Assembly (NCBI RefSeq): GCF_964188315.1
Contig: NC_135656.1
Span: 109,492,001-109,556,000, forward strand
Direction: 5' to 3'
Length of the DNA: 64,000 bases
DNA from: Podarcis muralis
Lineage: Eukaryota
Made by a program: the position numbers and the translations under genes. The notes under the pieces are model-generated. The model was not told the origin of the DNA, searched no databases, and was given only the letters and a program-made list of their open reading frames with translations. This document shows, piece by piece, positions 1 through 59,300 of the stretch (positions within the stretch are counted from its first letter, which is position 1; every line of letters starts with the position of its first letter).

Positions 1-318
1 AAAAGATCAAACGTATCCATTCTGAAGGAAATCAGCCCTGAGTGCTCACTGGAAGGACAGATCCTGAAGCTGAGGCTCCAATACTTTGGCCACCTCATGA
101 GAAGAGAAGACTCCCTGGAGAAGACCCTGATGTTGGAAAAGATGGAGGGCACAAGGAGAAGGGGATGACAGAGGACGAGATGGTTGGACAGTGTTCTCGA
201 AGCTACCAACATGAGTTTGACCAAACTGCGGGAGGCAGTGAAAGACAGGAGTGCCTGGCGTGCTCTGGTCCGTGGGGCCACGAAGAGTTGGACATGACTA
301 AACGACTAAACAGCAACA
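1..318 (+). mobile_element. BovB/RTE LINE 3' fragment (also 38341-38640 on + and 52848-53197 on -)
   Basis: [30 protein letters not shown] motif; (CAA)n tail. Confidence 0.9.
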
Positions 319-894
319 GAGTGAGGCCCCAAAAGACGGGTGCTATGTGAGTCAGCTGCTAGTGCGAGAGGCAGAGGTGCCAACTTGAATAGAATATCGG
401 GGGGGGGGGCAGGTAAACCACGTCCCACATAATCAATGACACGGCACACACAGACCATTTGAATGCCAATGCCCTTCAACATTGGGAGGCCCCAGCCCCC
501 TCAAATATTTGATTGGGGGGCCAGAGACCCCCTTGGCCCCTAGGAGTTGGCTCCTGTCAGGGACCATGCTGAGGAGTATTGTACCAGGTAGGGCCTGGGT
601 GGTGGCAGCGAGAAATAAAATGGTGGCACAGGGATCAATAGATGGTGAAGTGTCCGTGGACCCTGTGTGATCGCCACAACCGTCTCCCCAGCCTGACCCT
701 TCCAGAGAAGAAGAAGACATTTCAGAATTACAACAGGTTGCCAGGAACGGATAAGACAAGGAAAGTTCTTACCAATGCTATTTATTCAATATTCACTCAG
801 AGACGCAAGCATGTGCTTCACTACTGAGCTAGAATCCTTCCCCAAGCAAGGATATTCTTGGGTACAAATAGGGCCGTGTATCTCTAATACACCC

Positions 895-1204
895 GGGACG
901 CGGGTGGCACTGTGGGTTAAACTACAGAGCCTAGGGCTTGCCAATCAGAAGGCCGGCGGTTCAAATCCCTGTGACGGGGTGAGCTCCCAGTGCAAGTCAA
1001 TAAATAGGTACCGCTCTGGCGGGAAGGTAAATGGCGTTTCCGTGTACTGCTCTGGTTCGCCAGAAGCAGCTTAGTCATGCTGGCCACATGATCCAGAAAA
1101 ACTGTCTGTGAACAAACGGCGGCTCCCTCGGCCAATAAAGCGAGCTGAGCGCCGCAACCCCAGAGTCGGTCACGACTGGACCTAATGGTCAGGGGTCCTT
1201 TACT
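895..1204 (+). mobile_element. Sauria SINE
   Basis: gggacgcgggtggc head, CCTTTA tail, 13-bp TSD TATCTCTAATACA. Confidence 0.9.
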
Positions 1205-1391
1205 TATCTCTAATACAAGGGATGGGGAACCTCTATCTGGATCTTCAAAGGGCTTAGCTCATGCACCTTTCCTGGGGCACAACCCTCAAGGGTCCTGATC
1301 TGCTCTCTCTTCTGGTGGTTTTACCTTGATGGGATGTGTCCTTGAACTATCAGAGTACTTCTTGCTTGCCTGGACAGAGGATGGGTTATGG

Positions 1392-1527
1392 CAGGCATGG
1401 GCAAACTCGGCCCTCCAGATGTTTTGGGACTACAACTCCCATCATCCCTAGCTAACAGGACCAGTGGTCAGGGATGATGGGAATTGTAGTCCCAAAACAT
1501 CTGGGGGGCCAAATTTGCCTATGCCTG
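1392..1527. mobile_element. Palindromic hAT MITE (second copy 21043-21177)
   Basis: TIR CAGGCATGG; 8-bp TSD GGTTATGG. The second copy has a 7/8 TSD match. Confidence 0.85.
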
Positions 1528-2938
1528 GGTTATGGTGTGGGATGGGTGGCCACAACCACCTTTACCAGACCCACCACTGGAATGTGGTCCTCAAAACTTG
1601 CCCATGAGCAAATGTGGTCCTAGGGCTGGAAAATGTCCCCTACATCTGCTCTTATGCTACCAAAGAGTGAAAGCCAAGTCTTTCTTGCCTTTCTCTTGGT
1701 TCCTCTCTGGGCATGACAAAGAAACAGGATGTTGGTATGTGGCTATTAATAAACTTTGTGTGTCTGCAGAAGAAAACATTCAGTGCAAGTTGTGCTTATG
1801 CCCGTAAGAATTTAGGTGTCTTTGCTGGTGCAGAAAAGCCTGTGAATAATTGTGCCTCTCAGCAGACAACCTATGCGATTTCCTCCATTTTTATTGTGGC
1901 TTGAACATTTGTGATATTTTGTTGATTGCACAGGAGATACAATGCTGTCATGGCAGGATATTGTCTAGGTGACGTTTTTGTGTGTGTTAATAATAAAAAC
2001 AAGTTTCCATTTCAATAAGTGGGCTCAAGGGCTAATAATCACCAAGGTTTCTTAAAATAGCCTCCCAAAAGTGGGTCATTTTTATAGTCTTCTTACTGCT
2101 TATTGAGACCCAGAGGGATGAGCTGGTAGCCCTGTGTTAACCCAACTGTGGCTGCCAAGGTACTGACTGCAGCACCAGATACAGACAATGGCTGAGATGC
2201 ATGTTATTCAGATAAATGGAAACAGTACATGGTTTCACAGGTCAAAGGTAAGAAGTAAATGTGGTATCCGTCAGATGTTGCTGGGCTCTAACTCCCATTA
2301 GACGCCTCCAGCGTAGCCAGTGTTTTGATATTTTTGTTGTCTTGCTCAATTCAGCAAATGACAGTAATCATTTCATCAATACATCCAGTAATCAATACAT
2401 CCAGAAACTTGCACTTTGCAACTCTTGTTTTCTAAAACAGCAACAGCAATGCATGCAGAAAGTATACCAGGGAAAGAAGCATGGAGAAAATGCATTCTGT
2501 TAGGGAAAGTGGCAAAACTATATATGAACATGCATATGTTAGTGAAAATGTGCAGACACGTGTATGACTTCCTCGTGTAGATTTATATATACATATACAC
2601 AAAATTGCAAACTGATGAAGAAATGGTGAAAACTAAATTTAAGACCAGAAACAAATTGAGGAACTGGGGGAAACAAAACTAAAAGCTTCTTCTGTTTCAA
2701 GTAATAACAAAAGGCTTACTTCTGTTGCAAAAAGAAACAAACTTGTGATTAGTTGTGACCTCAAGATACCATGGTCACTCATGAATAAAATCTCATATGT
2801 CTCCACAAAATGAGCTGAGAGCACGTCCAGCCCAAGACATTTTGACACCTGAGCTGAACCACAAAATGGTGCCCTTCCTGCTAGGGGAAAAAGGGTGAGC
2901 GAAGATCTACATTAGGAATGGAGTAGCATGATATCACA

Positions 2939-3277
2939 GGGACGTAGGTGGCGCTGTGGGTTAAAGCCTCAGCACCTAGGACTTGCCGATCGAAAGGTCG
3001 GCAGTTCGAATCCCTGCGGCGGGGTGCGCTCCTGTTGTTCGGTCCCAGCGCCTGCCAACCTAGCAGTTCGAAAGCACCTTCGGGTGCAAGTAGGTAAATA
3101 GGGACCGCTTACTAGCGGGAAGGTAAACAGTGTTCCGTGTGCTGCCCTGGCTTGCCACGTGACCCGGAAGTGTCTGCGGACAGCACTGGCTCCCGGCCTA
3201 TAGAGTGAGATGAGCGCACAACCCTAGAGTCTGGCAAGACTGGCCCGTACGGGCAGGGGTACCTTTACCTTTACCTT
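2939..3277 (+). mobile_element. Sauria SINE (second subfamily)
   Basis: 15-bp TSD TAGCATGATATCACA; (ACCTTT)n tail. Confidence 0.9.
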
Positions 3278-4274
3278 TAGCATGATATCACAAACCTGAA
3301 GTCCAGCAGCAGCCAGGACTGCTGCAGTCAGAGGCTACAGCTGGGGAGACAGATTAGATTCTTGATCCTGAATCTGATGCTGGTAATAAAGGGATCCCTG
3401 AACCTCAGCCTGGTAGGCAAGAATCCACTGAACCAGTTCCCAGAGTACCAGGGCCTATAGAACCAGACCCAGATCCATCACAGGGAAACCAAAGGCTTTC
3501 CACACTAGCTCACCAGCCCAATGGTGCAGGGAACACACCAGATAGGAGACGAGATGTATCTGTCTTCAGCCTTTAAGAGGCTAGTTCACCCAGGGGCCAG
3601 TTGGAGCCTCAGAGAGGCAGAGGCTGGAAAGCCATCATTGAATTCCTAGCTTGTTGGAGCAATGTACTTGTCCAGAGCTATCCTGCCACCCTAGTGTTGT
3701 GACAACTGTGCTACCCTACCCTGCCACCTTGTCTTGCAGGCTGTGAGATACACGATCACTATACATGATCATGTATAGATAAACAGTTAGAAATAAGCTC
3801 AGGCCTCCAAGGTGCCTTGTGGAAGACTGGGGTTAAAACTGGGTGTCTATATATTAGAAAGTCCTGCCACTCAACACCTGGCCCAGGGCGGGGCCTGTTG
3901 GGCTCTATAAAGGACTGCTGCTGCTGCTGCTGGGCAGAGAGGGCTTCATTTTGTTTTGTTTTTGTTTGTTTAAATTGCTGTTATTTTTTACCTATGTCAT
4001 TTTAAACTGTGACATTAATGCTGTATTCTTAGTTTTAGGTTTTGATTTATGTGGAAATTGTTTCTCATTTGGTTGTGTATTTTTCTGACGTGGTTTATTT
4101 ATTGTTTATGACTTTTGTAATTATGTAAATCATGTTAAGCTGTAAGCCGCCTTGAGCATTGTTTTTTAACTGTGGAAAGGCAGCATACAAATAAAAAATG
4201 ATGATGATGATGATGAAGGAACATTTCCCCACTGGCTGTCTATCAACCCCAAACATACCTGACTAATTGCTATA

Positions 4275-4519
4275 CAGTGGACGCTCGGGTTGCGAACGTG
4301 ATCCGTGCAGGAGGCACATTCGCAACCTGCAGCGCCGCACCTGCGCACGTGTGGGTCGTGGCTCTGCGCTTCTGCGCATGCGCAAAGCACGATTTAATGC
4401 TTCTGCACATGTGTGAGCGCTGAAACCCGGAAGTAACCTGTTCTAGTACTTCTGGGTTTCAGTGCATCCATAACCCAAAAATGCGCAACTTGAAGTGTCT
4501 GTAACCCGAGGTAAGACTG
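4275..4519. mobile_element. Tigger-like MITE
   Basis: TA|CAGTGGACGCTCGGGTT ... AACCCGAGGTAAGACTG|TA. Confidence 0.75.
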
Positions 4520-5448
4520 TATAGCTAGGACGGGCAGCTTTCTGGAAAGCAGGGAAGACAAAATGTATAATTCCCTCTCACTGCCCTCCCTCCTGAAACC
4601 TTCCCATATAGTGCAGCGAGGCTAGGGATGGTTTTTATTTTGTTTTTGTTTTAAAGTCATGGTGTGCATCTCCCAGCCTTAACCCCCATTCCCTCAGGGA
4701 TGCTGTGAATGATTGTGGACTCAAACTGCTAAATCTCCTGTCCCCATGTGATTTCCCATCCCTATCCATCCTCCACCTGCAATATTCCTCAGGACCTGGA
4801 AGCCAGTAGTCAAAGGTCCTTGTCCAGTATCAAAGGGAGTCTTGTCACAATCCTCCGGTGACCTTTTTGGAGAGGAAAACAACCCTGGTTAAAGGCTGCA
4901 CCTCTAGAACATCTTGCCATTTGAAGAAGCAGGCAAGTAGAATGCTGAGTGTCCTCTGGGCAGTCCCCTTTTTGCACACACACAGCTGTATACGTCCCAT
5001 TCACCAAGCAACCAACCCTAATTTAATACACTATAAAGACTGCGGTTTCTGTGTGACGTTTCTATTCCTCATCTGCCTTCTGCTTACCACTTTTCCGAGC
5101 TGTCGCCCTCCCCCTCGGTTTATGCTTCAAGGCCATAATTCTCTGAAATGGTGCAAGTTAAGTTTCTATTCTCTTCCTAGCTGCCCAGCCTAAATGTATT
5201 GTGCAGCAGGTACCTGACCCTGCTAGACCACATCCTTTGCTGATCGTGTTATCTCAAGTGGTCTCATCACACCAGAGCTGCTTGCTTCTCTCATTTTCCA
5301 GAGACCAGATCTTTCACTTACCACGTAGAAGAAAAAATGAGAGACACAATTTTGAAACATTCAATTAAGGAACCAGTTCAGTTGCTGGAGGTTTGAGACG
5401 GGTATGATTTCAGAATTGGTGCGGTATCTAATTGTACGACCCTCCAGG

Positions 5449-8400
5449 ATGTTGATCAGTGTGGCATTCTTCTGGGCATTCTCAGGTGAGTAAAAGCAAA
5501 AGCAGATTGTGCTTTGGAAGTCGGTTCTTTGGGGACAACGCTGGGCAGAAGAGCCGGCAAGATGGGCGGTTATTGCTATAAGCGTTCTACAAATGGGATA
5601 GTGAGGCTGCTGGGGTGAGCTTCTGAAGGGCAGGAGAACCAAACGAATGGCAGTGAGTTTAGACACTTTGTTCTCCTTTAGAAAACCCAAAGCAGATCAC
5701 CCCACACCCTGGGTGGAATTCAACATCGCGAATTATATCAAATCTTCCATCTGCACAAGCAATTCAGCTTGCCAAACAGAATGATCCCTTCCCCCCTGTG
5801 TGCTGTTCTGAGCAGGGGCGTCCCTAGGAGTTAGATAGGTTGGTGGCTGCCAAGGGCGCAGGCCCAGGAAGGGCGCAAAAATAGCCCTCAGTTTAGAAAG
5901 TCATTGGCGGAGCACGAAAGGCAACAAAAAGGAAACTCTTTGAGTTTCTGGTCCATGGTCTCTCTCAGCTTTGGAGGCACCTATATATCTCCATGCCAAA
6001 TAAGCAAGGGGGCCCAGTTATGTCTCTGGTTCTGGGAGTTCTCTTGACCCATCCTAGGCCAAATTTGTGGGATGGACGAGGGGAGGAAGGGAGAAATCTC
6101 TCTTGCATGGGTTGAAGACCTTTCGCAGGGCTTCTGATGACAAGTTTCATTAGATGAATCCTCCCCGCGGAATCAACACATGGACCAAAATACACCTACT
6201 CTTGAAGTTTTATACTTTTCTGAATTTTGAGTTGGCGTGCCACATAAAAAGACTGCAAAATGCATATATTAGTGTGCAAAAATGTTTATAATGGGCAGCC
6301 ATGCATAAAGACATGTATATAGGCTCTGACAGTGTGGTGTAGTGGTTAAGAGCGGTAGTCTCGTAATCTGGGGAACCGGGTTCGCGTCTCCGCTCCTCCA
6401 CATGCAGCTGCTGGGTGACCTTGGGCCAGTCACACTTCTCTGAAGTCTCTCAGCCCCACTCACCTCACAGAGTGTTTGTTGTGGGGGAGGAAGGGAAAGG
6501 AGAATGTTAGCTGCTTTGAGACTCCTGAAGGGGATAGATAAAGTGGGANNNNNNNNNNNNNNNNNNNNNNNNNNNNNNNNNNNNNNNNNNNNNNNNNNNN
6601 NNNNNNNNNNNNNNNNNNNNNNNNNNNNNNNNNNNNNNNNNNNNNNNNNNNNNNNNNNNNNNNNNNNNNNNNNNNNNNNNNNNNNNNNNNNNNNNNNNNT
6701 TAATGCCCCTCACATGGTGAGAAATGTCAGGGATGAACACTTTCCCTGTGGGTGGCTTTCTATGCGATTACATAGGGCCTTCTGGGTAGTGGCGCCCTCA
6801 CTGTGGAGCACCTTCCCATCAAATGTCAAGGAAATAAACAACTATCTGACTTCTAGAAGACATCTGAAGGCAGCCCTGTTTAGGGACGTTTTTTAATGTT
6901 GGATGTTTCAGCGTGTTTTTAATACTCTGTTGGGAGCCGTCCAGAGTGGATGGGGAAACCCAGCCAGATGGGCAGGGTATAAATAAGACATTATTTAGCA
7001 CTGATGTGGATGCTGTCTCAGTGGCACAGCCAGTGTCATAGGATTTTTTGCATACCCTCCCATACATCTTCCTCTCTTTCTCAGTCTCAGACTCTCTGCC
7101 TTTCTCCAAAATGCTGTTTCTTCACAAAAGCACTAGATTATCTTATCAGCTACTGGGCAGGGCCCCCTTCTCTGACAGGCTTTTTCTGTACAGATGTTCC
7201 AAGAAAAACATGATGATGGCCACCAACAGGGGTGACTTTTGAAAGGGATTAGATAAATACGTCGAGGATAAGGCTTTCAATGGGTATTAGCCACAAATAC
7301 CATTTATGTATGGGACGCAGGTGGCGCTGTGGGTTAAACCACAGAGCCTAGGGGTTGCGGATCAGAAGGTCAGTGGTTCGAATCCCTGCGATGGGGTGAG
7401 CTCCCATTGCTCGGTCCCAGCTCCTGCCAACCTAGCAGTTCGAAAGCATTTCAAAGTGGAAGTAGATAAATAGGTACCACTCCGGCGGGAAGGTAAATGG
7501 CATTTCTGTGCGCTGCTCTGGTTCGACAGAAGTGGCTTAGTCATGCTGGCCACATGACCCAGAAGCTGTACGCTGGCTCCCTCAGCCAGTAAAGTGAGAT
7601 GAGCACCGCAACCCCAGAGTCGGCCACAACTGGACCTAATGGTCAGGGGTCCCTTTACCTTTACCTTACCATTTATGTATAGCAGACAACACATGCATTT
7701 TCCTTCTCTGTTTCTTCCAGGCATGGCATCAGCAGTGCCCATCTCCTCAGCTCACAGTTGGGTCAACGCTACCATCAACCAGACTGTTCAGTTACCCTTC
7801 TCCCTTCAGCCCCCCAGTCCTTCCTGGGAATTCCTCCACATCACATGGACTTTTATTGCCGGCAACAGAAATGTCCTTATCCTTGCATACATTGTAGACA
7901 ATTGCAGTGGAACAGCCCTCAAATGGTGGGGGAAAGAATGTAATACTAACAAACTGGTGGATGAGATGTATCAGCAGCGGGCAGACGTTCTCAAGAATGG
8001 CACGCTAGTGCTTCATCGCGTGGGGCTTCACGATGCGGGAATGTACCGCGCGACAATTAAATCCTTGGATTTAAGACTGCATGCGACAGTGAATCTCACC
8101 GTGACTGAAGGTAATGGACAGCAATGAGCATAAATAAATATTTAGGGTGCTTCATGCTTGGAATGATTGCCTGCTGTCCTGATGTGATCTCCAGGGCTTC
8201 AATCCTATGCATTTTTAACTCCACTAAATTCAGTGAGGCATAAGGTATGACTGAGAATGCCACTGTTTCAGTTCTATTCGCATAGAACTGAAACAAGTCT
8301 CCCTTCACAAAATCTATTTTGGTGGTTGTCCAACAATTATAACCTGAGGTCCAGCATCTGGTACAGCCAGTTCCTAGATGCTGAGACGCCCTGATCTAGG

Positions 8401-11400
8401 GGGTGGGGGAGCAATCTAGCAGCTTTATTCTTCTTCCTCTTCCTCTTCCTCTTCTTCTTCCTCTTCTTCCTCCTCCTCCTCCTCCTCCTCCTCCTCCTCC
8501 TCCTCCTCCTTTATTGAATTTATATACTGCCCTATACCCAGGGGGTCTAAGGGCCGTTCACAGAATAAAATCAGGATAGAAAACCACAAAATACCTAATA
8601 GAAATAAAAACAACAACCCAACAGCCCCCACTTATTGTTCTTATGTCATTCTCTTTGCAAGAAAGCTACAAACCCCACAACATCCTCGCCACACATTTTC
8701 TTTTCCTTTCTGCTTTTTATTTAGTTTTTCAGATTTTAAAAATTTACAAACAATTATCAAACAATCAGCACAGAAAGATAATTCCGAAGAATCTCCTGAA
8801 CTTTCCTCCTCCCCTTTGTGGGTCCTTATATTAACTTTTTCCTCCTGCATCTTATGTATTAATCCAAATCTTTTAAATCTCCATTATACCCCAAATTCAA
8901 CATTAAACTACAGTTGTTATTCCAATCCTACTAATAATTTTTATTGTTTACAATGGTTCTAAGGCAGATTATATATTTCCCCCATTCTTTGTTAAAAATT
9001 TCATCTTCCTGATTTCTTATTCTTCTGGTCACTTTTGCCAATTCGGCATGGTCCATCAACCTAACCTGCCATTCTTCTCTGGTAGGGACTCTGTCTTCTT
9101 TTCATCTCTGAGCCCCAGTTTGTTTGTACTGGTCACCATATCACTTTCTCCTTAAAAACAAAACGTAGGGCAGCTGGCTGCACTGTACAACACAGCTGGC
9201 AAGACCCCATTCAACCATCTTAATTTCCCAGAAGCTTATATTTATATGAAACTTAACATATAGGAAATGTTATTCATCAAGTTGTAGAAGTGTAGAGTTA
9301 CAAGGGACCCCAAGGGGGATGTCATCACAGGCCATCAGGCAGGAGAGGAACCAACCCCCATGGCAGGTTGCCAGTAATGGATAAGATAAGATAAGGAAAA
9401 GTCCTAACCACCTGCTATTTATTCAATATTTACAGAGAGAGGGTTGGGAACACAGCCTCTTGGAATAATGGTGTTGCCCCCAAGTAAATCTCTCCTCCCC
9501 CTTTTCATTCGTCATCTCTTCTATGGGTAGTGCTGAGCACCCTTTGCTTCTGAGCCCTTTGCTCTCCCACTTTTAAGGCCCACTGGGTTCTGGGAGATGG
9601 TGGGTCTGGAATGCTTTCTAGTGATAACGTGTCAGCCAGTTGTTCCGGCTCTGCCTCTTCCTCCTCTCCCATTATTTCTCAGCTTTCCCCCTCATCTACC
9701 TCTGAGCTGTGACCTCCCTCAAACCCCTGTGTAATTCTGAACTGTCTTCTTCTTCTCTGGAAGGGTCAGGATGGGGAGGTGGTCTCCACCATTCCTCCTC
9801 TGCCCAGTCCCTGACATGGGCTTCTGCCATGAACCCTGTAAATATTTAGCAATACCTCTGGTCCGAAGCCAGAAAAATGGCAGATCATCCCAACTACAGA
9901 TGAGTAAAACAAGTCAGCTTCACACACCATGTCTTGATGTTGGCTTGTTTTTAAGGAAGACGTGATATGTTTCTTGTTTTTCACCTTTTCTGATTCAATA
10001 TCCCTTTTCTTTCACCTCCACATCTGCCGTAGGAGCAGAGTCATTAACCCAGGAAAAACTCTGATGCAAACGTAAAGGTATACTTGTGAACCCTCATTGA
10101 TATCCTGACACTGTACAGCGGAACCTTAGTTCTCGATTGTCTCCATTGATGAACAATTTGGAACCTGAACGCCGAAAACCCCAAAGTAATTGCTTCCATT
10201 TTTTAACTCACCTCAGAAGTCAAATGGCTTCCAAGGCGTGTTTCTCCATTTTTTTCAATGGATTTTGCTGACCGCCCATTGATCCTCAGTCTCTGAACGT
10301 TTCGGAAATTGAATGGTCTTCCGGTACGGAATATGTTCGAAAACCGAGGTTCCACTGTATAATCCTTCTGACTCACCTATAATGATACGATAATCTTTAT
10401 TGTCATTGGCCCATACAGAACAACGAAATTGAAAAAATCTACACCAGACATTCAAAAACCAACAAGCCTGCTACCCCAGCTACCCTGCCTGCTCTAACTT
10501 ATGGATAAATCTCCTCTGTTGAATGGCACACTGCGAAGTTCCCTTGTGTAATCCTTTTTTTTTCTTTTTTCTGATGTTGTTGATTTCTTTTTGTTTGACC
10601 TTGTGGTGTTTAGTGTCACTGGCTTTTGCCGCAATAAAACTTGAACTTGAACTTGATATTTGTTTTAAACCAATCACATTAACAGTATTTTTCTTTCTTT
10701 TATTCTGCTTTATCTTCTTTATGTAATTAAATAAAAATTACTGGATGGCTTTCGGCTCAGTCTTACTCAGAACAGACCCCCCTGAAGAAGGCTTAACTGA
10801 ATAACACCCATATTTTTTTTTTTAAAAAAACAAAAACTAGAGCTGGTTGGAGTCACATTCCAGCCAAGCTAAAGCACCCAAGGTATTTTAAGGAAGACGT
10901 GATATGTTTCTTGTTTTTCACCTTTTCTGATTCAATATCCCTTTCCCCCCCACCACATTTACTGCAGGAGCAAGATCATTAACCCAGGAAAAACTCAGCA
11001 CTGAGAATATGGTTCGGATGATTTGGGGTGGCCTCCTCCTCTGCTTCCTTGGGCTCTTGGTGGTAGATGTAAGTGCTGCATTTCTTTTAAAAAAAAATTG
11101 CTTGGAAAAAGAGCAAAGGGAAATGTTAAGTGTCTTCCTCAGAATAGACCCCCTGAAGAAGGCTTAAATGAATAACACCCATTTATTAATTTTTTTAAAA
11201 AACCCAAATACAGAAGTTGGTTGGAGTCACATTCCAACCAAGCTAAAGCCCCCAAGGAGGGAACAGGGCAAGAGCCAGAGAGAGGCGTGGCCTGTGGAAG
11301 TTCTAGGAAAGGTCAAGGGACCCCTGACCATTAGGTCCAGTCGTGGCCGACTCTGGGGTTGCGGCGTCATCTCGCTTTATTGGCCGAGGGAGCCGGCGTA

Positions 11401-12194
11401 CAGCTTCCGGGACATGTGTCCAGCATGACCAAGCTGCTTGTGGCGAACCAGAGCAGCGCACGGAAACGCCGTTTACCTTCCCGCTGGAGCGGTACCTATT
11501 TATCTACTTGCACTTTGACGTGCTTTCGAACTGCTAGGTTGGCAGGAGCAGGGACCGAGCAACGAGAACTCCACCCGTTACAGGGATTTGAACCGCCGAC
11601 CTTCTGATCAGCAAGTCCTAGGCTCTATGGCTCAACCCACAGCACCACCCACATCCCTAGTGTAAGTTCTAGAGGTCAAGAAAGAGAATTCTGGACTGCC
11701 ACGTTCTGCCCATATGTCAGAGGTTCCTCAAATGTTCCAAGCCAAGTGGCAAGGGGGAACCTGATTTCTATGTTGTCCTAGCAAACCGTTGCTGCAAAAT
11801 AATCATTATGGGAACAGGGATCTTTACTGAAGCCTCCACAGCTTGAGGGCCAAACTCCACTCTTTTTCTCCTAGCATTTTTGCACAGTGGATGGAAGCAT
11901 CACTCAGGGAAGGAAGACTGTGGGCCATCCTGGGAAATCCACTATTGACTGGAGCTGATATGTCATGAATGAGCCATCTGCTCATTTCATGAATCAAGGA
12001 GAGCAACAGGACACCTATCAAAAATTGGGAACTGTTGTCTACCCCATCTACCCCCATTGCAGGGCTGCAATTTTCAGCCACTCAAGTATCATGATCTGGA
12101 AGTAACCGAATATCTTGAATTGCAACAGGCATACAAATATGACTTCAACCAGCACCGTGAAGCCCTTAAGTTCAGGCAGCAGAAAGAGAACTAG
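5449..12194 (+). CDS. Putative single-IgV type I membrane receptor (CEACAM/CD2-SLAM-like V domain, LRC-type TM); model join(5449..5485,7721..8110,10968..11068,12063..12194), 219 aa
   Basis: Leader MLISVAFFWAFS-G ends at CAG|GTGAGT (phase 1). The 390-nt phase 1-1 exon encodes an IgV (TVQLPF, HITWTF, YQQRADVLKNGTLVLHRVGLHDAGMYRATI). TM exon (G)ARSLTQEKLSTENMVRMIWGGLLLCFLGLLVVD is phase 1-0 and ends GAT|GTAAGT. Tail exon GCNFQPLKYHDLEVTEYLELQQAY...KEN* follows a pyrimidine-rich CAG (phase 0). Lengths sum to 660 nt with no internal stop. The tail exon is the least certain part. Confidence 0.6.
6549..6699. other. Assembly gap (151 N)
   Basis: Run of N. Confidence 1.
7312..7666 (+). mobile_element. 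Sauria SINE about 55 bp upstream of the IgV exon
   Basis: 14-bp TSD TACCATTTATGTAT. Confidence 0.9.
7721..8110 (+). CDS. IgV-like domain exon lacking the canonical B-F disulfide
   Basis: Acceptor tttcttccag| and donor GAAG|gtaatg, symmetric phase 1. W in the C strand; DxGxYxA replaces DxGxYxC; two Cys lie in the C'-C'' region. Five N-X-S/T sequons. Lies inside ORF 7639..8127. Confidence 0.85.
8426..8510. repeat. (CTT/CTC)n microsatellite; other microsatellites at about 30836 (TG), 32123, 38905, 51092, 56185 (ATT), 56353 and 58013 (TA)
   Basis: Direct inspection. Confidence 0.95.
11309..11657 (-). mobile_element. Sauria SINE
   Basis: Reverse complement of the same consensus. Confidence 0.88.
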
Positions 12195-56395: not shown

Positions 56396-59300
56396 CTTTC
56401 GTAGATTTTCACGGGTACAGGAATGCAGGTTTTGGTGTCCTCGGGTGTCTTCCCGTGTAAAAGTTGGGGTGTCTAGGCGACGTTTCGACGAGGTCTCACT
56501 CGTCATCTTCAGGCTGGTGCTTTCGGCTTCTTGTTACTGGAACAGAGCAGGATCTCAGTGTTTGAGTTCCTATAAATACTGTTGAGGAGGTGTGTTGTAT
56601 AGCCTCCAATGTTCTGGGCAGAGAGGAAGTTCCCAGGCTAGTGTGCCTTTTCTTCTTTTGTTCCTTAATTGCTTGAGGGATATCTTGAGTGATTTCTTGA
56701 GTGATATCCTGAGTACCACTTAGGTGGGTCATTAGGTGTGGATTAGTTGCTAAAGCCTTTGTGTCTTGACCTCTTGAACTTTGTGAAGAGTTTTTCTGAG
56801 AAGATGGCTGTACTGCATTTAGTTGTGCTCTGGCTTGGCTTCGTGTATAGGGGCGAGCTGTGGTTTTGTGGCCTGTGCCAGCCAGATCTGTGTAGGGATT
56901 GCAGGGGGGTGCAGCATCCGGAGGTGCCACCATGGTTTGGCTACTGGATGGTGTCTGTAATTTATCTGTGGAGAGGGTCTGGGTTTGGGTCTGGTGTGGT
57001 TGATTGGTGATGGCGTTCTGTGTGCCTCTGGATCTGGTGTCAGTTTTTGTGGGGAGGGCTAATTTCCAGATGTCTGGCAAGCGGGATGTGTCGTCACGTT
57101 TGTTCATGTTGTGAGGGTGTTTCTCTATCTCGATGGCTTCCATGATTATTCTCTTGTGGTGATGTTCCATGTTAGAGAGCAATTTGGAATCTGCAAAATT
57201 AATTTCGTGTCCTGTTTCTTTCATGTGTTGGAAAAGAGAGGAAGTTTTTTCTTCTTTTTTGACGGCATTCTTGTGTTCTGCGATACGTGCATTTATTCGT
57301 CTGTTTGTTTGTCCAATGTACGTGGCTGGGCAGACTTTGCAGGGTATTTCATAGACCCCTTGGTTTTCCAACTGGATTTTATCCTTGGGGTTTCTGAGGA
57401 TATTGGCTATTTTTTGGTTGGCGCAAAAGGCTGTTTTGATATTGTGTTTATGGAGGATTTTGCTAATTTTATCTGTAGTGCCCTTGATATAAGGAAGGAG
57501 GGCCATGCCATTGTTTTCTTCTGTGTCTTGGTTTTTGGGGGGTGTTTCTTTTTGGATTAGCTTCGTAACCCTGTTTTGCTGGTATCCATTGGCAATTAAC
57601 ACATTTGAGAGATTCTGTAACTCAGTTGTCAAGTGGTCTTTGTCAGCCAGGCGTTTGGTTCTGGAGATGAGAGTCTTGGCTACGGAGTTTATTTGTGCAG
57701 GGTGGTGGTGTGATTGTGCATGTAAGTAGCGGTTGGTGTGTGTTTTTTTCCGGTAGATAGTGTGTCCTAGGGAGCCATCAGGTTTTTTGTAGATTAGGAC
57801 GTCAAGGAAGGGAAGTTGGTTGTTGGCTTCTATTTCCATAGTGAATTGTATTTTGGGGTGTAGGCTGTTGAGATGTGTGAGGAAGCTGTCCAGTTTTTCC
57901 TTCCCGTGTGGCCAAATTACAAAGCTGAAGATGACGAGTGAGACCTCGTCGAAACGTCGCCTAGACACCCCAACTTTTACACGGGAAGACACCCGAGGAC
58001 ACCAAAACCTGCATATATATATATATATATATACAAGCTGAAAATACCCTAATTCAGTGCTTTTTTCCTTGGGGGTACTCAAGGGTATGCAGTACCGGCA
58101 CCTTTTTGGCTAGAAGAAAAGCACTGCCCTAACTGCGTGCAGTTAACTGCAGTTAGTCGCTGAGCCACCAATGCTCAGCCTAACCTACTCCATAGGGCTG
58201 CTGTGAAGGTAAAAGCAGGAAGGGGAAAACAGTGTGCCAAATCTGACTCCCTGCGACCCCATGGTGCTGTTGTGCGCTCATCACCTGTGTCCAACAGCAT
58301 GGTGTTGTTGTTGCTGAATGCCAAGTTGCTCATAATAATAATAATAATTTATTTATACCCCCACCCATCTGGCTGGGTTTCCCCAGCCACTCTGGGCAGC
58401 TTCCAACAAAATATTAAAATACAATAGTCTGTTAAACATTAAAAGCTTCCCTAAACAGGGCTGCCTTCAGATGTCTTCTAAAAGTCTGGTAGTTGTTTAT
58501 CTCTTTGACATCTGATGGGTGGGCGTTCCACAGGGCAGGCGCCACTACTGAGAAGGTCCTCTGTCTGGTTCCCTGTAATCTTGCTTCTCGCCAGAAGGCC
58601 CTCGGCACTGGACATCAGTGTCCGGGCTGAACGATGAGGGTGGAGACACTCCTTCAGGTATACTGGGCCGAGGCCGTTTAGGTCTTTAAAGGTCAGCACT
58701 TTGAATTGTGCTCAGAAACGTACTCATTTGTGCTCATTCATTATTCAATTATGGGTGAGGGCACCAAGCTGGGGTGCATTACTGAGACTTGGGTTGGTGC
58801 AACTACATGACTACCTGGGTGGAGAAGAAAGCTTGCCATGGTTCACAGGAGTTTGTTCTCCCTCACCAGGAAACCTCTCTTTACCTTGGAGCAGAAGTAG
58901 AGGGCCTGCATCTACTGCTGGGTCTGAGAGACAGGTCAGGGCCGCTGTTGGTGTACCACCCACTCATCTGCCCAAAAGCTTCTCTGACATGGTTTCCTTT
59001 TTCTTTGCTTTTCCTTTTTCCTCCATGTTTTTATTTATACTCTTCAAGTTTATGCATTTCATTAGTTTTACAATCACTTTAACATTTCAAAGTTTGACTT
59101 CCTTCGCCCTCTTCCTGTAGTTCCTTAAATTTATTTTTTAACAACTTCTGCATATTCAAATTCATTTAATTTGCTCATTTAATTATCTACTTCAAATATA
59201 TACTCTTAAGAAACTGCAGGTTATTATAATAATCCTGCTAATGTTTTTATCTGTTTGCAATTTATCTGTAAATATTCAATAAACCATTTCCATTCTTTTA

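Follow-up and report, generated by a model that had tools for sequence, protein, structure and literature searches.

LOC114590948 of the wall lizard Podarcis muralis, a V-domain membrane protein gene and candidate adaptor-coupled immunoreceptor of an unnamed sauropsid family

We analysed 64,000 nucleotides (nt) of the Podarcis muralis genome (assembly GCF_964188315.1, contig NC_135656.1, positions 109,492,001–109,556,000 of the forward strand; hereafter, the window), near one end of which a preliminary description, made from the letters alone, had placed a hidden, spliced receptor gene with a single V-type immunoglobulin domain. A protein search showed that the V exon (window 7723–8109) was 100% identical to the P. 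muralis ‘uncharacterized protein LOC114590948’ (218 amino acids (aa)) and 78% identical to Zootoca vivipara LOC118076168; a later protein search added Lacerta agilis LOC117042379 (74% identity). LOC114590948 is a real, spliced and expressed gene, which is uncharacterised, as had been proposed, but not hidden, given that RefSeq already annotates it (without name or function). Window 5449–11958 (+) holds this gene, which has four exons and encodes a type I membrane glycoprotein of about 200 aa.

RefSeq exons of LOC114590948 were placed on the window by tblastn at 5404–5487, 7720–8112, 10955–11068 and 11875–11955. The four exons first described do join in frame to a product of 219 aa with GT/AG at all sites; exons 1–3 were correct and agree with RefSeq, and the start codon and last exon differ. 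RefSeq starts at an in-frame ATG at 5404, 45 nt upstream of the ATG at 5449. At the position equivalent to 5404, Zootoca copy A has CCG and no ATG, and the orthologues of Zootoca, Lacerta, Pogona and Anolis begin at the position of the ATG at 5449 (MIGV or MMIGV), which makes the latter the conserved start; the upstream RefSeq codon probably is not. The flanks of the assembly gap in intron 1 (window to 6331 and from 6700) are colinear with neighbouring positions of Zootoca intron 1 (L001 10880 and 10893), and the gap (Table 1) therefore falls in a repeat insertion peculiar to Podarcis and leaves all reading frames untouched. A tblastn search of the window found no paralogue of the V exon. Within the Zootoca gene, the exon 1 region and the first ~100 nt of exon 2 occur twice (second copy, L001 14201–16053); the Zootoca and Lacerta models include a mini-exon (GMTS...VNQTE) from such an intragenic second copy, and no such copy is present in the Podarcis window.

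Splicing was examined using contigs from four Podarcis RNA runs (X1, X4, X5 and X25) placed on window 7660–12400, which at such depth can show presence but not absence. Exon 2 is covered in X1, X4 and X5 at a depth of 2–15. The junction 8110/10968 (GT..AG), proposed from the letters alone, is present in two runs (X5, with 77 letters on the shorter side, and X25). Indirect evidence for the exon 1/2 join comes from an X1 contig over exon 2 whose genome match ends at 7718, as that join would produce given that the last letters of exon 1 are CAG as well. A tandem duplicate of the stalk exon, which has its own AG acceptor and GT donor, has zero RNA depth and is bypassed by the 8110/10968 junction; the Lacerta model treats the equivalent exon as coding (...EKLRCKHK...). 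The window also holds two inverted copies of a transfer RNA-derived short interspersed nuclear element (SINE) at 7300–7650 (intron 1) and 11290–11650 (intron 3), and RNA contig depth over the latter (up to 1e5) represents the repeat family, not LOC114590948. One X4 contig (depth ~21) matches from 12124 (12124–12270), with a boundary that is non-canonical for plus-strand splicing; its preceding 255 letters occur nowhere in 7660–12400.

The last exon had been placed at 12063–12194, with a Tyr-rich tail, and this is the part of the gene model that lacks support. The only junction observed from 11068 leads to 11875 (GT..AG; X25), on a 231-nt contig that runs unbroken from 11875 to 12075 and so passes the 12063 acceptor unspliced; a junction 11068/12063 was not found among the four runs on 7660–12400. 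A 33-bp deletion in Zootoca removes both the polypyrimidine tract and the AG of that acceptor. The tail of Lacerta agilis is identical to the RefSeq Podarcis tail encoded from 11875 at 25 of 27 residues, and the first residues of this tail (H..T....ITQ..K) also align with Pogona. Across the family described below, the exon after the membrane span usually opens with His directly behind the terminal Glu or Asp of the span, a junction that fits the exon at 11875 and not that at 12063, and none of the family members compared has a tail resembling the product of 12063–12194. The 12063 frame is open over 42 codons in both Podarcis and Zootoca, with the other two frames closed. The entire 11875–12260 stretch is uniformly ~94–95% identical between the two species, and the open frame therefore carries no special signal; its eight substitutions, of which six are non-synonymous, give a ratio of non-synonymous to synonymous substitution rates (dN/dS) of 0.63, which is uninformative at such a count. 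We read 12063–12194 as 3′ untranslated region (UTR).

Table 1 Features of LOC114590948 in the window
Feature	Position	Strand	Description
Exon 1	5449..5485	+	Start ATG and signal-peptide codons 1–12; donor in phase 1
Intron 1	5486..7720	+	Holds the assembly gap 6549–6699 and SINE insertions
Exon 2	7721..8110	+	End of the signal peptide and V-like domain; no B/F Cys, conserved Cys pair, five sequons; RNA contigs in X1, X4 and X5
Stalk duplicate	10033..10077	+	Copy of the 5′ part of exon 3; in-frame TGA at 10061–10063; skipped in observed RNA
Exon 3	10968..11068	+	Stalk and membrane span: N-M-V-R, 16 hydrophobic residues, Asp at the exon end
Last exon, coding part	11875..11958	+	27-aa tail (HFCTVDGS...DWS) and TGA stop; exon runs on as 3′ UTR
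Exon 4 of the preliminary description	12063..12194	+	Open frame (44 codons) inside the 3′ UTR; unsupported as coding

The protein consists of a signal peptide, one V-set-like domain, a short stalk, a membrane span and a 27-aa tail without Tyr. Its match to Pfam V-set is below the cutoff (E = 0.004), and 25 of 28 family members match V-set (best, 2.7e-09). A sequence search of PDB with the V exon alone gave only generic matches to the E–F strands. An AlphaFold2 model from an alignment of 28 family sequences (mean predicted local distance difference test score of 83, >90 over the V domain) folds into a nine-strand V-type beta sandwich, C′ and C″ strands included, followed by a long membrane helix, in agreement with the proposal of a type I membrane protein whose one V domain lacks the disulfide. 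The domain itself had also been described correctly. The B and F positions are occupied by Phe and Ala, no family member has Cys there (that is, the canonical B–F disulfide is missing), and a conserved pair of Cys residues (C74 and C86) is located in the model where C′ ends and C″ begins. Five N-x-S/T sequons are present. Structural alignment using VIA-align gave Z scores of 14–15.7 and root-mean-square deviations of 1.5–2.2 Å to nectin-1 D1, 2B4, CD48, SCN4B, CD166, BARF1 and NTB-A, and Foldseek searches of PDB, AFDB Swiss-Prot and ESM Atlas added VSTM5, JAML, CD226 and TIGIT as fold neighbours. Scores are nearly level across nectin, CD2/SLAM, sodium-channel beta, VSTM5, JAML, TIGIT and CEACAM proteins, and fold searches therefore cannot place the family: the V fold is certain, the subfamily is not.

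Word-indexed protein searches found only the three lacertid orthologues and a few others, and exhaustive HMMER searches were needed to reveal the family (106 representatives at E ≤ 1e-3, 37 at E ≤ 1e-10 and 14 at E ≤ 1e-30). The 37 proteins at E ≤ 1e-10, all named ‘uncharacterized’, come from lizards, geckos, turtles, alligator and birds. Family members are known in Pogona, Lerista, Anolis, Paroedura, Sphaerodactylus, Eublepharis, Hemicordylus, Varanus, several turtles and Alligator, and in the birds Calonectris, Ciconia, Aquila and Phalacrocorax, nearly all of them ‘uncharacterized’; more distant relatives in newts, frogs and ducks have been automatically named CEACAM3-like or CEACAM5-like. 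The gene is thus not lineage-specific, as had been supposed, but has relatives across sauropsids and more distant ones in amphibians. In the family alignment, W55, D117, G119 and Y121 never vary and C74 and C86 almost never do; members contain one to several V-like domains. Judged by the shared V-domain signature and span motif, LOC114590948 belongs to an unnamed, sauropsid-wide family. In a distant relative from the cormorant, the span is uncharged and the tail carries TxYxxI and VxYxxI, which resemble the immunoreceptor tyrosine-based switch and inhibitory motifs (ITSM and ITIM); this suggests that the wider family comprises both activating and inhibitory forms. Some turtle and Varanus relatives are modelled as type II proteins with an N-terminal cytoplasmic ITIM-like VxYADL, a signal-anchor span that resembles those of C-type lectin natural killer (NK) receptors and a C-terminal V domain; one of these models corresponds to a single Logan contig of 1180 nt. 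The type II models could reflect real exon shuffling with neighbouring lectin genes or read-through.

A pattern scan identified 16 members with an arginine-type span, and in all of these the span consists of (N/S/T/G/A)xxR, exactly 16 hydrophobic residues and Glu or Asp. Asn stands at position −3 of the Arg in 10 of the 16, and in one subgroup D-Y-T immediately precedes the span. The tails of the 16 members are 4–59 aa in length and not conserved. Podarcis has an NxxR motif, an acidic residue at the other end and a short tail without motifs (Table 1). Features of this kind are listed by Guselnikov, Taranin and co-workers for the NxxR transmembrane module (NxxR-TM, or TM1), which they link to FcRgamma coupling in receptors of the leukocyte receptor complex (LRC) and which occurs also in FCRL-like and CD2/SLAM-like receptors of Xenopus (PMC6557307, PMC2413239, PMC4536121); association of the module with FcRgamma has been demonstrated experimentally (PMC2413239).

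The genomic surroundings of the family are those of immune receptors. The Zootoca orthologue has a C-type lectin gene on its upstream side, four C-type lectin genes surround the Calonectris member within 10 kb, and the Pogona member lies directly downstream of a butyrophilin-like gene (V-set, C2-set_3 and PRY/SPRY), an older Pogona model being fused to a TRIM10-like gene. In Podarcis, V2R genes (exons with ANF_receptor and 7tm_3 domains) follow downstream, from ~18.5 kb to 55 kb of the window, which bears out the V2R cluster that had been noted nearby; this adjacency is not conserved. A V2R-specific role was considered and rejected, given that the Calonectris orthologue lies among lectin genes; birds, moreover, are not known to have V2Rs. 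The V2R cluster also includes a 528-aa open reading frame at 56496–58082 (−) that matches GIY-YIG weakly (E = 5e-4) and is probably part of a Penelope-like retroelement. The V exon has a dN/dS of 0.63 relative to Zootoca and the lacertid genes carry internal partial duplications, both typical of fast-evolving receptor genes.

On the basis of these features, the LOC114590948 protein is most likely an adaptor-coupled activating immunoreceptor of a fast-evolving, paired-receptor-like family, a reading that we hold, together with the gene model, with moderate confidence. The V-domain receptor, which lacks a signalling tail, would serve as the ligand-binding subunit, and its membrane Arg would pair with an adaptor carrying an immunoreceptor tyrosine-based activation motif (ITAM), FcRgamma being the first candidate and CD3zeta or DAP12 the alternatives; the outcome would be an activating leukocyte receptor. 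Pairing with an ITAM adaptor is the most likely arrangement because the tail has no signalling motif of its own. Several points weigh against this assignment. Q or W replaces the span Arg in a few family members, and Lacerta has Gly where the acidic residue of the span stands. Exon 3 of Zootoca is 4 nt shorter, and as a result the exon corresponding to 11875 is translated in another frame; this indicates that the span end and tail are loosely constrained in lacertids. The resemblance to NxxR-TM is one between a motif and its description in the literature, rather than an alignment to LRC sequences: a query with the stalk, span and tail of a turtle member retrieved only close turtle relatives, and a query of PDB with the span gave only chance matches. 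RNA support consists of a handful of low-depth contigs.

A wider picture can be drawn tentatively. The gene may belong to an undescribed tetrapod family of V-only receptors that was kept in sauropsids and is not seen in mammals, with activating (NxxR, FcRgamma-coupled) and inhibitory (uncharged span, ITIM/ITSM) forms built from one to several copies of a disulfide-less V domain with the C′/C″ Cys pair. Such a family, placed among C-type lectin receptor, butyrophilin and TRIM genes (as in major histocompatibility complex- and NK gene complex-like regions), might be an amniote remnant of the expansion of NxxR CD2/SLAM-like receptors in Xenopus. We regard this as possible but less likely than not.

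Among the alternatives to an adaptor-coupled receptor, an adhesion molecule or co-receptor of the CEACAM, CD2/SLAM or nectin type, which would form homophilic or heterophilic V contacts and use no ITAM adaptor, fares best but appears unlikely. The disulfide-less V domain with its NG(T/S)L..V...D.G.Y signature is of this kind, amphibian relatives carry the automatic name CEACAM3-like, adhesion V domains (nectin-1, CD48, 2B4, NTB-A and SCN4B) rank first among structural neighbours, and there are partial profile matches to CEACAM1, JAML and CAR; these neighbours, however, score almost equally and none is singled out. A conserved span Arg and acidic residue combined with a short, non-conserved tail is no feature of those adhesion families, the LOC114590948 protein has no C2 domain, and the gene does not lie at the wall-lizard CEACAM locus as described (PMC13278318). 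The likeness to CEACAM or CD2/SLAM that had been proposed at the outset thus stands for the type of V domain, whereas membership of either family is unsupported, given the missing C2 domain, the different flanks of the CEACAM locus and fold searches that favour neither family.

Less probable still is that the gene family is labile and LOC114590948 is decaying, with at most a minor function in lacertids. Decay would fit the Zootoca gene, in which the end of exon 3 differs by 4 nt with a shift of frame and part of the gene is duplicated internally, as well as the dead duplicate stalk exon in Podarcis, the dN/dS of the V exon and the low RNA depth. Podarcis, however, has an intact reading frame and a correctly spliced mRNA, the Lacerta orthologue is intact and ends in the same tail, and the signatures of V domain and span are retained across sauropsids. 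Least probable of all, and in our judgement very unlikely, is a genuine alternative isoform that joins exon 3 to 12063 and would signal by itself through a 43-aa tail with YHDL and TEYLEL (ITAM- or ITSM-like): the acceptor has a good polypyrimidine tract and AG, exon 3 joins it in frame, of the three frames only this one (42 codons) stays open in Podarcis and Zootoca and the RNA contigs are unable to show the absence of 11068/12063, but the evidence on the last exon given above (the unseen junction, the spliced contig that reads straight across 12063, the acceptor and tract deleted in Zootoca, the lack of a similar tail among family members, the Glu/Asp-then-His junction that matches 11875 and a uniform conservation in which a dN/dS from only eight changes says little) speaks against it.

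Innate immune receptors of sauropsids (reptiles and birds) are poorly catalogued. If lizards, turtles, crocodilians and birds do share a V-domain family of FcRgamma-type activating and inhibitory members, it would add a paired-receptor system to sauropsid immunology and provide a further case in which the NxxR membrane module was reused by unrelated ectodomains. The novelty is modest, as this is an annotated but unnamed gene of a sauropsid family that looks undescribed. For annotation, the lesson is that the last exon of RefSeq is right and that its upstream start codon is probably not the conserved one. Nothing special is implied for vomeronasal receptors, the V2R neighbourhood not being common to the bird orthologue examined.

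Several known systems come close to the protein. As in CD2/SLAM receptors (CD2, CD48, 2B4, NTB-A and CD84), the N-terminal V domain lacks the B–F disulfide, and CD48, 2B4 and NTB-A rank among the closest in structure (Z = 14.5–15, up to 28% identity); Xenopus members of CD2/SLAM also use NxxR spans (PMC6557307). Unlike in CD2/SLAM, the V exon leads straight into the stalk and membrane-span exon without a C2 domain (multi-domain relatives repeat the V domain, again with no C2), and there is neither a GPI (glycosylphosphatidylinositol) anchor nor an ITSM tail, the supported tail having no Tyr and TEYLEL occurring only in the unsupported exon. The conserved C74/C86 pair is also not a CD2/SLAM feature. 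The N domains of CEACAM proteins share a disulfide-less V domain with Y..R...N(G/A)(S/T)L.(I/L)..V...D.G.Y, and partial profile matches were found to CEACAM1, 5, 6, 7 and 8, of which those to CEACAM1, 5 and 6 reach significance at whole-chain level but cover only ~91–153 of the profile (E–F strands). The frog ‘CEACAM3-like’ relative had no match among solved structures and provided no bridge to CEACAM structures. In the wall lizard, the CEACAM locus is flanked by TOMM40 and LIPE, and CEACAM1 consists of an N domain and up to 16 IgC domains (PMC13278318); the locus of LOC114590948 differs in its flanking genes, with V2R genes downstream and C-type lectin or butyrophilin-like genes beside the orthologues.

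VSTM5 and the sodium-channel beta-2 and beta-4 subunits share the architecture of a single V domain, a membrane span and a short tail, and are the top whole-chain fold matches, although identity in AFDB is 16–18%. VSTM5 and these beta subunits keep the canonical B–F disulfide. Orthology to VSTM5 was rejected, as none of the 28 family members matched VSTM5_C (Pfam PF28389) at E ≤ 0.1. The FcRgamma-coupled receptors with an NxxR-TM (LILRA, NCR1/NKp46, GPVI, FCAR and OSCAR, and XFL and CD2/SLAM-like receptors of Xenopus) differ in their ectodomains, which are C2/I-type LRC or FCRL domains rather than a single disulfide-less V domain. Compared by their published descriptions (PMC6557307, PMC2413239, PMC4536121), they have in common with LOC114590948 an outer Asn-x-x-Arg, an inner acidic residue and a short tail without motifs and, with some members of the lizard family, an upstream DYT.

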